From the sequence record OP310984.1: DNA of 64,000 nt; one strand, written 5' to 3'. The translations under genes were made by a program, and so were the position numbers. Below the pieces are notes generated by a model, which was given only the letters and a program-made list of their open reading frames with translations, was not told the origin of the DNA and did no database searches. Below are positions 26,392 to 30,343 of this stretch, in pieces (positions within the stretch are counted from its first letter, which is position 1; the number at the start of each line of letters is the position of its first letter).

Positions 26392-28760
26392 TATACTACT
26401 TCCTCAAGTTCGATTTTCATCAGTCCAGTGGTGTTGGATACAGCATTTGCTGAGTCACAGTTATACCACTTATTGCCATCCTTGATGGTGTAGGTGTCAA
26501 CTTGATTTGCATCGTCCGCCTTATAAGTGAAGTTTAAGCTACCAGTAGAACCTTTAGATAGGTTACTGCAACGTAGTTTACCAGTATTGGTTACTTCAGT
26601 ACCAATATCAGTTTCACGGTTCGGCCAAGCAGCCACACTTAGAGTGCGGAATACAAATCCACCTAGTACGTAAGTACCACCATTTACACTATTAGTTTCA
26701 ACACCAGCTAAACCTTTTAGAACCACACTGTTAAAATCGTAGGTTCCTTTAGGATCATCGTCATGTACTAGTAACGCACGTGTCCATACCTTACCAGTGG
26801 CGTCAGATTTCCAATCCTCAGTAGCCCACTTACCGCCAGGCGCATTCATGGCCGGAGCTGCACTTAGTTTCTGAGTAGAGGTTAAAGTAATGACATGACT
26901 TTGTACTTGGGTTCCAAAGTTACCACCTGAGCGAAGGCGAGCTGCTGGATAGGTAACCGTTGCAGTAGGAGCCGCATTTGCAATAGCTACAACAGCAGTA
27001 GCCGTAGCTACACTACCATTAGCTGCACGTTTAGCAGTAATTAATAGGTTATTAGTGCTGTCGTTATAAGTACCAGACTTATAAGTAACTACCTTAGCAA
27101 TTTCTGCTTCATTTGCACTGGTTATAGTGAGCTGATCATTTGGTGAGGAATAAACCACACTATCAGCATTAGATACTGTATTGGCTACAGTAGCAGTTTC
27201 ACCTACTTTAATAGCACTTTGACCAGACGGATAAGTTACTTGACCAATATTAACAACTGGGCGAAGATCGTTTAACTGCATGGTGTTAATTTTATCTTCG
27301 GAACCAGCATCACTGGAAGTAAACCATTCTGACCATGAACCAGTGGATTTCTGAACACGTACACGGAAACCATATGCCTTAGTAGTATTACCACGGTCAG
27401 CTACGTAAAGACCAGTAACCTCTAGTTCTTTAGTAGGTGCAACAGTACCACTACTTTCTTTCAGTGCACCAAAGTCAGCAATTTCGTATGCTACTATATT
27501 TTCATCAGTAACTACTTTAATTGCAACAAGGTCATCTTCTTTAAGTTCTGTTTGACCTAACGGATAACCGCCAGTAAATACAGCACTAGTAATATTAGCG
27601 GGAGTATCGGCTAATACCTTAGTAGTGAATTTAGCGCCATCGGCGTGCTCTACAACAATATCTGCATAACCTTCGGTAGTGGGTGCACCAAGATCAATAT
27701 CGGCAGTAGCAATCCACATAGGTGGATTAACGCCAGGAGTTACAACTGCATCTATGTTATTGATTTTAACACTAGGTACATAACTAGAATGTCCAGTTAT
27801 TGCATCAACGATAACTCGAACATTACTAGTAGTTGATAGGCATGACTGTACGCTGTGCCCATCGGGGGTACGCACAATACTACCTACGTTCTGACTGGGG
27901 TCAGTTGCTTGTACATCTTTGACGAATACACCGCCACTAATACCTTCATTTTTAGGAAGGTTCTTAAGATCAACAGTTGATTCATCAGCGCCTTCAACAA
28001 TACGGATATTGCCGTCATTCTTGAATGCAATGTAATCAGTTAAACTACCAATCTGGAATTCACCATTGTCGTAAATACGAATTTCAGACTCAGGTAATTC
28101 GGGTAATGCACCTTGCGTAGTGGGTGCAGAGGCGTTCTTTAGATAAGAATAACCTTCTGCTTCCATACGGCCTTGTTCCATCATACGCTGTGGTACTTTA
28201 TCACCAGCGGTTAAGTCATCTTGATTTAGGCGCTTATCAAACAGGAAAGCAAAGTTATGGAAAGCAGCGTTGGATGATAATCCACCATTCTTACCAGTTA
28301 CACGCAGTACATCTTTAACTGTATAGCCTTGTTGATTTAAGAGTGTCTGGAGTAGTTCAGCAGTCATGGTTGCATGCAGTGATGTTAACCATTCCTGTTC
28401 AGTACCTTGGAAACCATTTTCCACAGCTACTTCATATGCACTCTTACCAGCATCACCTTTAAGGGATGCTATAAACTCTTCTTCAGTACCAACGAAGCCT
28501 AGATCGACTGCGATTTGATAAGAAGATTTACCTTTAAGCGAATCAAGCCATTCGGTTTCAGTTCCCTGGAAACCATTTTTAACGGCAATCTCGTACGCAC
28601 TAAGACCGGGTGCCCCAGTCTGTAGTTTTGACAGCAGAAACTTATAGTTATCGACTTGACCAGCTGCATCGGTATGAATTAATTCAATATACTCGCTATC
28701 GTTAAGAGTAGCTAGATCCGGCAGTTGACTGATCTTGCCTTTGTCTGTAGCATTTGCCAT
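26391..28760 (-). CDS. Virion fibre-associated protein with Ig-like C-terminal domains (gp145 position)
   Basis: 789 aa; N-terminal KISQLP motif, three SAY..GFxGTExEWL repeats; TAATG coupling to gp146. Confidence 0.75.
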   Translation of the reverse strand: MANATDKGKISQLPDLATLNDSEYIELIHTDAAGQVDNYKFLLSKLQTGAPGLSAYEIAVKNGFQGTETEWLDSLKGKSSYQIAVDLGFVGTEEEFIASLKGDAGKSAYEVAVENGFQGTEQEWLTSLHATMTAELLQTLLNQQGYTVKDVLRVTGKNGGLSSNAAFHNFAFLFDKRLNQDDLTAGDKVPQRMMEQGRMEAEGYSYLKNASAPTTQGALPELPESEIRIYDNGEFQIGSLTDYIAFKNDGNIRIVEGADESTVDLKNLPKNEGISGGVFVKDVQATDPSQNVGSIVRTPDGHSVQSCLSTTSNVRVIVDAITGHSSYVPSVKINNIDAVVTPGVNPPMWIATADIDLGAPTTEGYADIVVEHADGAKFTTKVLADTPANITSAVFTGGYPLGQTELKEDDLVAIKVVTDENIVAYEIADFGALKESSGTVAPTKELEVTGLYVADRGNTTKAYGFRVRVQKSTGSWSEWFTSSDAGSEDKINTMQLNDLRPVVNIGQVTYPSGQSAIKVGETATVANTVSNADSVVYSSPNDQLTITSANEAEIAKVVTYKSGTYNDSTNNLLITAKRAANGSVATATAVVAIANAAPTATVTYPAARLRSGGNFGTQVQSHVITLTSTQKLSAAPAMNAPGGKWATEDWKSDATGKVWTRALLVHDDDPKGTYDFNSVVLKGLAGVETNSVNGGTYVLGGFVFRTLSVAAWPNRETDIGTEVTNTGKLRCSNLSKGSTGSLNFTYKADDANQVDTYTIKDGNKWYNCDSANAVSNTTGLMKIELEEVV

Positions 28761-28862
28761 TTTTATTTCCTTGCTGTATAAGAAACACTAACATGTTAGT
28801 CTTTCGAAGAAGACTCATACAGTAATGTACTATTGCCAATGAGTAATATTTCAACAACATAA

Positions 28863-28882
28863 GAGAGTCCCGAAGGACTCTC
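28863..28882 (-). terminator. Terminator after the endolysin
   Basis: Minus strand GAGAGTCC-TTCG-GGACTCTC-TTATG. Confidence 0.8.
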
Positions 28883-28965
28883 AAAAAGTTACATTAGCAA
28901 AAGATGTGGTTTATCATGAGGGGAAGTTTCACATGATACCATAGACTCCATTCTATTGCTACATC

Positions 28966-29748
28966 TTATTTTCTATGTGCTGCAACTTTACCATCCATTA
29001 GGTTATAAACTTCTTGAATGGTTTTAGGTGACCCATCTTTGTTATAAAAAATAGATGGGTTTGCCTGAGCTTCTTTTGGGAAATGGGTAGCAGCTAATTC
29101 ATTCTGACCAGTGGTCAAGAAACGACGCGCTGCACCAGGTCCAAAGAAGTGAGCTAAATAAAGATCAGTATCAGTTGGTTCACGTTTAAGGACGGGTCGA
29201 AGAATATTCATATTCTCTTTAATGAGTTCGGCACCCATTAAAGCACTTATACGTGGATCTTTACGTAATGCACCTGTTGGATCAGTAATTACGCCATACT
29301 TCATGCCATAGTTTTCAATCATTGTTTTCCATGTTCCAGTAAGGAATTGGAACCAACCAGTAGCTGATGAAGTCTTAGCTTTTATTTCGTAATCGAATGC
29401 TGATTCAATAGAAGCAAATGTTAATAGCAACTGGCTACGAACACCAGTAGCATTTTCTACTGCATTCATAACTGGAGTTGCAGCTGCACGTGATTTATTT
29501 GCAGTTGGCATAGGGATAGTTTTATAAGGAATAGGTGGGGAATATTTACTGAATAATTCAGCCCAAGTATTCTTACCTACAATACCATCACTATCCAGAC
29601 AATTATCTTTTTGAAATTTAACTACCTGATTAAAGGTATTATTTCCAAAAATACCATCTGGCTTTCCAACATCATAGCCACATAGATTTAATAGTGTCTG
29701 GAGTTGACATACCTCATCACCCCTATCGCCTTTGCGTAATACTTTCAT
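28966..29748 (-). CDS. gp144: Modular endolysin: peptidoglycan-binding domain plus lytic transglycosylase
   Basis: 260 aa; DGIFG/DGIVG PG-binding repeats, ASIES catalytic Glu, ATGWFQF; recognised as phiKZ gp144. Confidence 0.97.
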
Positions 29749-29809
29749 GATATAACCTCTACATATTAACCCAGTATGAACCCTGGGTTAGGTTCATTGA
29801 GGGTATTAC

Positions 29810-30343
29810 TTAACTTTCTAGATAACGGATTTGACCATTTTCTAGATAACGTGCTGCGCCATTCTCTAATAGCCGGATAGTATCTGATGTATCATCAATA
29901 CGTTGAATTAGTATATTACATTCGCCATAGTAAGCATAACTACTCGACATAGCTACTATCGTGTATGGAACAACATCCGTAGTTGCATTGATTGGTGTTG
30001 TATCAAATGAAACATCATCTGGTCCAAGCTTCCAACCCCGTGAACGGTTGATTTCTTCAGCAATTGCTTTAGGTGTTAAAGTACCAACTATCTTAAGGAT
30101 AGATCCTTCACCAATAGCTCGTGGATCAGCAAAATCTAACCGACGGTAAGTTAACATGTACTTAATGTCAGTAGTAATGTCGATCATTTCAATAAATGTA
30201 CGTCCAGGCTCAATCGTGGTTGGACTAAAAAACATATCTTCAAATGTAACTGTTTCTGGTTTGAAGTTTATTTTTAAATCATCCCGCGCAAGTTTTACTA
30301 GCGCATTCCTCGATGCCATGTCATACGGAAAGATATCCTGCAT
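29810..30343 (-). CDS. Virion structural protein with C-terminal RxLENG repeats (gp143 position)
   Basis: 177 aa ending RLLENGAA-RYLENGQI-RYLES. Confidence 0.75.
   Translation of the reverse strand: MQDIFPYDMASRNALVKLARDDLKINFKPETVTFEDMFFSPTTIEPGRTFIEMIDITTDIKYMLTYRRLDFADPRAIGEGSILKIVGTLTPKAIAEEINRSRGWKLGPDDVSFDTTPINATTDVVPYTIVAMSSSYAYYGECNILIQRIDDTSDTIRLLENGAARYLENGQIRYLES

Follow-up and report, generated by a model that had tools for sequence, protein, structure and literature searches.

A C-terminal repeat tag and an N-terminal fibre domain as a candidate docking pair in phiKZ-type jumbo phages and other tailed phages

Introduction

What purpose is served by the short repeat at the end of a phage protein that was recently named a lysis regulator, and is it connected with the fibre gene that lies two genes downstream? 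The question is raised by a stretch of 64,000 nucleotides from sequence record OP310984.1 (here called the window), whose region 26391-30343 shares 100% of its letters with Pseudomonas phage Koomba boorn-mokiny kep-wari Wadjak 2 (OP310984) and is 98.2% identical to phiKZ. The window phage is a phiKZ-type Pseudomonas jumbo phage, and because of this identity the gene numbers given in the initial annotation of the stretch are phiKZ numbers. That annotation noticed repeats at the end of gp143 and the motif K-I-S-Q-L-P at the start of gp145, and proposed that the one binds the other, so that a fibre made of gp145 and gp146 could dock on gp143 and also on capsid subunits extended by readthrough. 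Here we follow the triple repeat, which we call REP, and the gp145-type N-terminal domain (K-I-S-x-L-P), which we call KIS-N, through viral contigs, isolate phages and the window phage itself. We propose, with a probability of about two in three, that REP acts as a portable C-terminal docking tag and KIS-N (~45 residues) as its N-terminal socket on trimeric fibres or spikes.

Results

REP genes and KIS-N genes occur together in viral contigs

According to the initial annotation, phage genes ending in such repeats are often followed by fibre genes that start with K-I-S-x-L-P. We find that this rule holds in both directions, the two motifs occurring together in phage genomes far above background. 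The forward set consisted of IMG/VR stretches that match a codon-degenerate DNA pattern of the triple repeat, and was thereby selected for repeats of the Arg type; open reading frames (ORFs) in the fetched loci were called mechanically. The pattern is found in 116 IMG/VR stretches, against <1 expected by chance according to our own estimate. At the protein level the motif ends no more than 5 residues from the stop codon in 90 of 109 occurrences, and the open frames that bear it have 24 to ~880 codons and lie on contigs of phages of small to jumbo size. A hidden Markov model (HMM) of KIS-N, built from strict seeds and iterated once, marks 73 open frames in the forward loci, 57 of them downstream of a REP gene. 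Downstream DNA is available for 87 terminal REP genes. A KIS-N gene starts at -60 to +100 nt from 48 of them, the stop codon of the one often overlapping the start codon of the other, and within 3 kb of a further 9; those of the nine that were inspected are jumbo-phage contigs with an endolysin gene in between. On one jumbo contig (L023/L192) a gene of the gp143 type ending in REP stands directly before a KIS-N fibre gene, with no endolysin gene between them.

For the reverse set 80 loci were fetched by likeness to KIS-N alone, with an alignment of 10 sequences as the query, and 68 of them could be evaluated. The upstream gene ends in a repeat of period 8 in 52 of these 68 loci, or in 36 of 51 when distinct tail sequences are counted, whereas such an ending is present in 130 of 8081 open frames of >=60 codons in the fetched loci, a background of <=1.6% that includes the true positives. 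Because the forward set had been selected on Arg-type triple repeats, only the reverse set is unbiased for the form of the repeat. It reveals a second form, in which Phe, Tyr or Leu stands in place of Arg and the unit, again present three times, has the sequence hydrophobic-L-L-Q-E-N-G. No single chain with REP followed by KIS-N was found in the fetched loci.

The type of repeat covaries with one column of KIS-N

Among 91 distinct adjacent pairs, column 23 of KIS-N is Glu in all 54 that have Arg-type repeats, and Pro (26), Ala (10) or Val (1) in all 37 that have non-Arg repeats. The normalised mutual information between column and repeat type is 1.0 at column 23, 0.72 at the next best column and <=0.54 at the others. 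As judged from these alignments, a salt bridge that was lost on both sides would leave such a pattern. The window phage conforms to the pattern: a REP tag lies no more than 5 residues from the C-terminus of gp143, a KIS-N HMM match lies downstream of it, and the charges match, gp145 having Glu at column 23 and both REP tags of this phage being of the Arg type.

Two REP tags and one KIS-N domain in the window phage

In a scan of ~99% of OP310984 we find exactly two REP tags, at the tail of gp143 and in an extension of the major capsid protein gene, and exactly one KIS-N domain, in gp145. The codon-degenerate pattern of the triple repeat matches the window at these same two places, against 0.00 matches expected (100 shuffles). 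According to the initial annotation gp143 ends in three RxLENG units. Its last 21 residues do comprise two full units of the form R-x-L-E-N-G-x-x; the third is shortened to R-Y-L-E-S, so that the count is rather two and a half. When gp143 is aligned with 35 homologues (33-53% identity), every sequence keeps the three Arg and three Glu of the repeat and nearly all keep the second Gly, although the mean column identity is only 47%. The other half of the observation, that gp145 starts with K-I-S-Q-L-P two genes downstream, is borne out, with the motif at residues 9-14, and the gp145 N-terminus matches the KIS-N HMM, which was built from contig examples, at E 2e-12. The gp143 tag (29816-29875) and the capsid tag (55444-55503) have an identical stretch of 17 bases, and both encode R-Y-L-E-N-G-x-I-R-Y-L-E; selection for a common partner or gene conversion could account for this identity. 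The features of the window are collected in Table 1.

Table 1. Positions of the genes and motifs discussed, numbered from the first letter of the window
Feature	Position	Strand	Remarks
gp143	29810-30343	-	177 aa; globular DUF7941-type domain (~residues 1-150) and C-terminal REP tag
REP tag of gp143	29813-29875	-	three 8-residue units R-x-x-E-x-G-x-x, the last shortened, reaching the stop codon
gp144 endolysin	28966-29748	-	260 aa; Pfam PG_binding_1 and SLT (peptidoglycan-binding domain, lytic transglycosylase)
gp145 fibre protein	26391-28760	-	789 aa; sole KIS-N domain from the genome scan
KIS-N domain of gp145	28620-28760	-	residues 1-47; K-I-S-Q-L-P at 28719-28736; Glu at the covarying column
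three ~29-aa repeats in gp145	28353-28622	-	residues 47-136; type common to many phage fibre proteins
gp146	23110-26391	-	1093 aa; collagen-like fibre protein; start overlaps gp145 stop; no KIS-N
gp120 major capsid protein gene	55519-57762	-	ends TGA; Pfam PhiKZ_MCP, E 5e-228
capsid extension	55441-55518 (55438-55521 with both stops)	-	26 in-frame codons after TGA, second REP tag, then TAA
terminator-like G+C-rich hairpin and short T run	55401-55430	-	right after the TAA of the extension; read directly from the sequence
gp126	48768-49211		DUF7941 protein without REP tag
gp127	47887-48759		DUF7941 protein without REP tag

REP carriers resemble tail proteins and KIS-N proteins resemble fibres

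The long REP carriers match phrog_1101/6284 'tail protein' over about the first 800 of 1405 profile positions, some of them also with Pfam Phage-tail_3, and by these matches such a carrier reads as a long tail protein that has been cut short, with the fibre gene next to it. Among other carriers the matches are to phrog_48 'tail protein', phrog_1407 'major tail protein' or DUF7941. The bodies that follow KIS-N are collagen, YadA-head, pectate-lyase-like or fibritin C-terminal parts. An isolate, Erythrobacter phage ZS04, has the same arrangement: a 917-aa 'tail protein' ends in REP, and the next gene encodes a KIS-N-bearing 'minor tail protein' of 151 aa.

The carriers include some that depart from this picture. 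ORFs of 42 aa that consist of a hydrophobic N-terminal stretch and REP (L007:2283-2408, L021:3093-3218, L093:611-736, L095:8622-8747 and L105:10225-10350) each stand immediately before a KIS-N gene (225-769 aa). Proteins of 160-167 aa ending in REP (L017:3378-3869 and about ten alike, in L019, L044, L051, L053, L071, L077, L106 and L109) are followed by a gene of 146-150 aa that is not KIS-N; the L017 protein, the one that was scanned, matches phrog_1407 'major tail protein'. The partner of these proteins, if any, must be encoded elsewhere. A gp143-type protein of 320 aa with a REP tail (L075:2626-3585, minus strand, on a 220-kb contig) precedes a gene whose N-terminus is of another kind, not KIS-N. 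Two loci, L065 and L080 (plus strand, to the locus end), hold long internal arrays of REP-like units in a large protein instead of the usual terminal triple.

gp143 has the fold of a baseplate protein

Profile searches of PHROGs place gp143 in phrog_2935 'virion structural protein' (E 4.6e-46). Its match to Pfam DUF7941 (PF25613), over residues 64-148, stays below the gathering score (18.3 bits, the cut-off being 27); several of its homologues carry a precomputed PF25613 match, and gp126 and gp127 exceed the cut-off with 38.9 and 98.2 bits. An AlphaFold2 model built from 36 sequences, with a mean predicted local distance difference test (pLDDT) score of 89.5, has one globular domain (~residues 1-150), after which the REP tail forms isolated beta-bridges with a period of 8 (pLDDT 68-82). 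The sole significant fold match of this model in the PDB, by Foldseek, is 9xqd_0 (E 6.8e-7, probability 1.00, template modelling scores 0.61/0.70), which is the modelled part, the N-terminal domain, of phiKZ gp127 in the outer peripheral baseplate. At the level of sequence the profile of the gp143 family (36 sequences) matches PHIKZ127 weakly (E 0.1). The proteins gp126, gp127 and gp143 of phiKZ have been described as DUF7941 proteins, a family placed at the peripheral baseplate (Goslar paper, 10.64898/2026.04.21.720040). The disordered linker and C-terminal globular domain of DUF7941 proteins are not present in gp143, where the REP tag follows the N-domain directly and the chain ends at residue 177; by a check of the sequences the REP tag is not present in gp126 or gp127.

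Head and virion assignments in this study rest on the notes of GenBank records. PHIKZ143 is noted there as 'structural protein' (AF399011), and its 201phi2-1 homologue gp228 as 'identified as virion protein by mass spectrometry'. Among isolates, gp143 homologues are found only in the clade of phiKZ, PhiPA3, 201phi2-1, Phabio, Psa21 and Noxifer. Homologues of gp143, N-termini of the gp145 type and the capsid extension all occur in this same Pseudomonas clade; outside it, the extension alone was checked.

gp145 and gp146 as parts of one fibre

No Pfam family is matched by gp145, and this includes the curated N-terminal anchor families of fibres; matches to PHROG fibre families begin at residue 47 and cover residues 47-136. 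A single-sequence AlphaFold2 model of residues 1-140 is poor (pLDDT 54.8), with low-confidence helical units over the ~29-aa repeats and a hint of a beta-hairpin at 24-42. A protein database search with residues 1-48 returned gp145 alone, and tblastn of the 48-residue N-terminus against isolate phages gave the Pseudomonas clade only; a match in Anoxybacillus phage A403, inside its 2-kb gene beside tail genes, was judged to be due to chance. A full-text search of the literature for the motif strings gave unrelated words only. In many GenBank records gp145 is called 'tail sheath' or 'tail assembly protein' by way of phrog_15433, while the true sheath is encoded elsewhere in the genome.

The neighbouring gp146 matches Pfam Collagen (E 1e-24) and phrog_3904 'tail fiber'; it was ruled out as a KIS-N protein, giving no match to the HMM even at E 10. 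Its collagen-like repeats coincide with a G+C content of 0.46 at positions 24001-26000, against ~0.37 elsewhere. A single ORF of 1480 aa with a KIS-N start, gp230 (L229:7420-11862), corresponds in 201phi2-1 to both gp145 and gp146; it is noted as a virion protein. This fusion suggests that the two phiKZ proteins make one fibre. PHIKZ145 and PHIKZ146 are labelled 'structural head protein' in AF399011, and we assume that these labels derive from mass spectrometry of heads of a tail-less mutant.

A conserved REP extension follows the stop codon of the capsid gene

The extension that readthrough of the capsid gene would add is present in the sequences of the clade. In the window phage the 26 codons after the TGA of the capsid gene hold an Arg-type REP, have no start codon before codon 15 and end at TAA. 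A TGA followed by a REP extension of 26-30 codons is present in 19 of 19 capsid genes of the clade (18 IMG/VR relatives with 73-100% identity, and Noxifer; 18 distinct sequences), with two R-x-x-E-x-G units in all sequences but one and the terminal unit in all 19. The extension frame is open in every one of the 19, whereas the other two frames contain stops in 18 of 18 and 15 of 18 IMG/VR relatives. None of five distant chimalliviruses (RAY, pPa_SNUABM_DT01, RTH11, RSF1 and LAh10) has the repeat, and all five capsid genes end in TAA; the leaky stop is thus kept where the extension exists. Given that the in-frame extension is conserved, we infer that it is translated.

In the solved capsid each hexamer has at its centre a bundle of six helices made by the C-terminal arms (residues 728-747), and the arm of the pentamers reaches gp244 on the outer surface; the major capsid protein is modelled to residue 747 in that paper, which makes no mention of readthrough. 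From the position of the arm in hexamers and pentamers, the extension could plausibly emerge on the outside of the capsid. A literature search on phiKZ, readthrough and major capsid protein gave nothing relevant.

A second locus, L043 (minus strand, ~820-900), has a frame of 322 codons that ends in TGA and is followed by an in-frame REP of 27 codons without a start codon, and then by a KIS-N gene; judging by this layout, it looks like a second case of readthrough, outside the jumbo phages. For most short REP ORFs readthrough was rejected, as they have a start codon of their own, and only L043 and the capsid genes have the look of it.

Discussion

The docking interpretation of the initial annotation is supported by the two-way co-occurrence of REP and KIS-N, the covariation at column 23, the types of carrier and cargo, the conserved capsid extension and the head-protein labels, evidence that is drawn from sequences and their records. 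In the mechanism that we propose, one REP tail would bind one fibre trimer, one unit per protomer, as the constant number of three units suggests, so that a single chain of any symmetry could hold a three-fold fibre. The contact would probably be made by pairing of beta-strands, with the Arg of the repeat facing a Glu on the first strand predicted for KIS-N. In the phiKZ clade gp145 would carry gp146 as its distal part, and two docks may be available to it. One would be gp143, a paralogue of gp127 from the baseplate, by way of its tail. The other would be the REP tail that ribosomes reading through the capsid TGA may add to a minority of capsid subunits, in which case the frequency of readthrough would set the number of head fibres.

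We hold a wider reading more tentatively, with slightly more doubt than confidence: that REP and KIS-N form a general code across tailed phages, that readthrough of the capsid gene equips the head with gp145/gp146 fibres in tunable number, and that gp143 is in the first place a fibre mount and not a lysis regulator. Head fibres acquired by readthrough would explain why gp145 and gp146, which are apparently essential, are absent from the 2026 phiKZ atlas, in which 40 proteins are modelled and gp143, gp145 and gp146 are not mentioned; thin, flexible, sub-stoichiometric fibres would be lost in symmetric averaging.

A question remains, how much speaks against docking and against the head fibres in particular? 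A KIS-N gene is missing from the neighbourhood of about one third of terminal REP genes, among them those for the 160-167-aa proteins, and some KIS-N genes, such as that of Halomonas phage QHHSV-1, have no REP upstream. Profile searches of the PDB with KIS-N, REP and the gp143 family gave no solved structure with either motif and no chain that matches KIS-N or REP. In the atlas the twelve baseplate fibres are attributed to gp131, gp133, gp134 and gp135, and head fibres are not shown. Transposon sequencing gave five insertions in orf143 and none in orf145 or orf146, which is at odds with gp143 as the only dock; a second dock, on the capsid, would account for the dispensability of gp143. Finally, a noisy neighbour-joining tree has only ~5-6 switches of repeat type, so the covariation may reflect few evolutionary events, and since REP and KIS-N are usually adjacent they could be inherited as one block. 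All of these observations, together with the naming of gp143 as a lysis regulator (PMC12894885), count against our proposal.

The inheritance of a block may be taken further, to a junction that is no more than the boundary of a co-inherited cassette, serving recombination or translational coupling, where the two peptides make no contact and the covariation is mere linkage. The parts do usually lie within a few bases of each other, other KIS-N columns are associated with repeat type at 0.4-0.7, and independent switches are few and their number uncertain. Yet the conservation is at the level of protein, as the pattern used for searching was codon-degenerate and residues vary between the motif positions; in the phiKZ clade the parts are ~1 kb apart and nevertheless matched, the capsid REP tag being as far as ~27 kb from the only KIS-N gene; and coupling is perfect at one column only, where it is a charge swap. 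We consider mere linkage very unlikely. An assembly aid that aligns three fibre N-termini so as to start trimerisation, and need not be retained in the virion, would predict the same covariation as docking does and would account for the number of units, which is always three; overlapping stop and start codons favour coupled translation, and many carriers, being ORFs of 42-80 aa, have hardly anything else that could anchor them. A pure chaperone needs no fusion to virion proteins, however, and REP also ends large tail-tip proteins and the capsid extension, which are permanent parts of the virion where fibres attach. A transient template of this sort seems to us unlikely.

The function recently assigned to gp143 offers a different account, in which the protein is mainly a cytoplasmic regulator of the holin gp142, its tail serves lysis timing or plays no part in docking, and the proximity of gp145 is incidental. 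In plasmid assays gp143 shifts holin timing: removal of gene 143 from a plasmid-borne lysis cassette delayed lysis by ~15 min, and co-expression of gp143 triggered the holin ~10 min earlier and blocked one truncated holin (PMC12894885). The gene, moreover, lies between the holin and endolysin genes and is non-essential. The interface named in that study from an AlphaFold3 model, however, is gp143 residues 40-61 against the holin N-terminus, outside the repeat tail, which is neither used nor explained. No known antiholin family (T4 RI and RIII, P1 LydB) is matched by gp143, for which Pfam and PHROGs give DUF7941 and 'virion structural protein' only. More than 100 unrelated phage proteins without lysis context end in the same tail and are paired with fibre genes; the fold of gp143 is like that of its baseplate-bound paralogue, its 201phi2-1 homologue was found in the virion by mass spectrometry, and in the related jumbo contig a gp143-type gene stands directly before the KIS-N fibre gene where no endolysin gene intervenes. 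A purely regulatory gp143 is therefore quite unlikely in our view, although a lysis role and a role as fibre mount could coexist. The surroundings of the gene are themselves structural: the atlas places six copies of gp144 at the neck, wedged between neck whisker and sheath, and in 201phi2-1, according to the record notes, mass spectrometry found in virions both the counterpart of gp142 (the reported holin) and gp226, the next protein upstream. A structural module thus encloses the 'lysis cassette'.

If the docking of KIS-N on REP is true, any virion protein could become a fibre mount by gaining ~20 C-terminal residues. It gives a concrete and testable hypothesis for the site and attachment of gp145 and gp146, large virion proteins that are free of insertions and not placed in the atlas, and it makes gp143, just published as a lysis regulator, part of a fibre module whose conservation extends well past the jumbo phages. 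Readthrough of the capsid gene, if true, would set fibre number at the level of translation. A rule that can be read from sequence and matches holder to fibre would also aid the annotation of tail modules in metagenomic phages, as most of the proteins concerned have no Pfam family.

We found no earlier description in the literature of the REP/KIS-N pair or of the capsid extension, and to our knowledge, and as far as could be searched, conserved readthrough of a capsid gene has not been reported in a double-stranded DNA (dsDNA) jumbo phage. Related devices are known. The A1 protein of Q-beta is a coat protein extended by UGA readthrough, and as in the phiKZ clade a leaky UGA ends the capsid gene and a minority of longer shell subunits would meet the host; here, in contrast, the phage is a 280-kb dsDNA jumbo phage, and the extension of 26-30 residues looks more like a docking tag for a separate fibre than like a functional domain. 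In T7, likewise a dsDNA phage, a recoded minor capsid subunit with extra C-terminal residues exists as 10B, the extension of 10A by a -1 frameshift, whereas readthrough is the candidate here. We know of no fibre-docking role for T7 10B.

Receptor-binding proteins are held by anchor domains, as when the N-terminus of T7 gp17 sits on gp11/gp12 or in branched tailspikes, and there too a modular N-terminal adaptor plugs varied receptor-binding bodies into a conserved virion site. Unlike these, gp145 matches no Pfam family of fibre N-termini, and its partner would be a portable C-terminal peptide tag on unrelated carriers. The adenovirus fibre is anchored by its tail on the penton base, and phi29 carries head fibres of gp8.5; a short conserved N-terminal part of a trimeric fibre is in these viruses anchored at a capsid site of another symmetry, which is the likeness to gp145. 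We found no sequence relation to either, and here a linear repeat of three units on one chain would do the anchoring, with the tag also present on tail proteins. The analogy with adenovirus has been drawn before (PMC12796354).

Related by fold are the DUF7941 proteins of chimalliviruses (Goslar gp22/gp23, phiKZ gp126/gp127), proposed to form host-recognition filaments by head-to-tail self-assembly in a study that mentions neither the REP repeat nor a link to gp145 (10.64898/2026.04.21.720040). The globular domain of gp143 belongs to this type, and gp127 has been modelled at the outer baseplate. Instead of the linker and C-terminal domain, gp143 has the REP tag.

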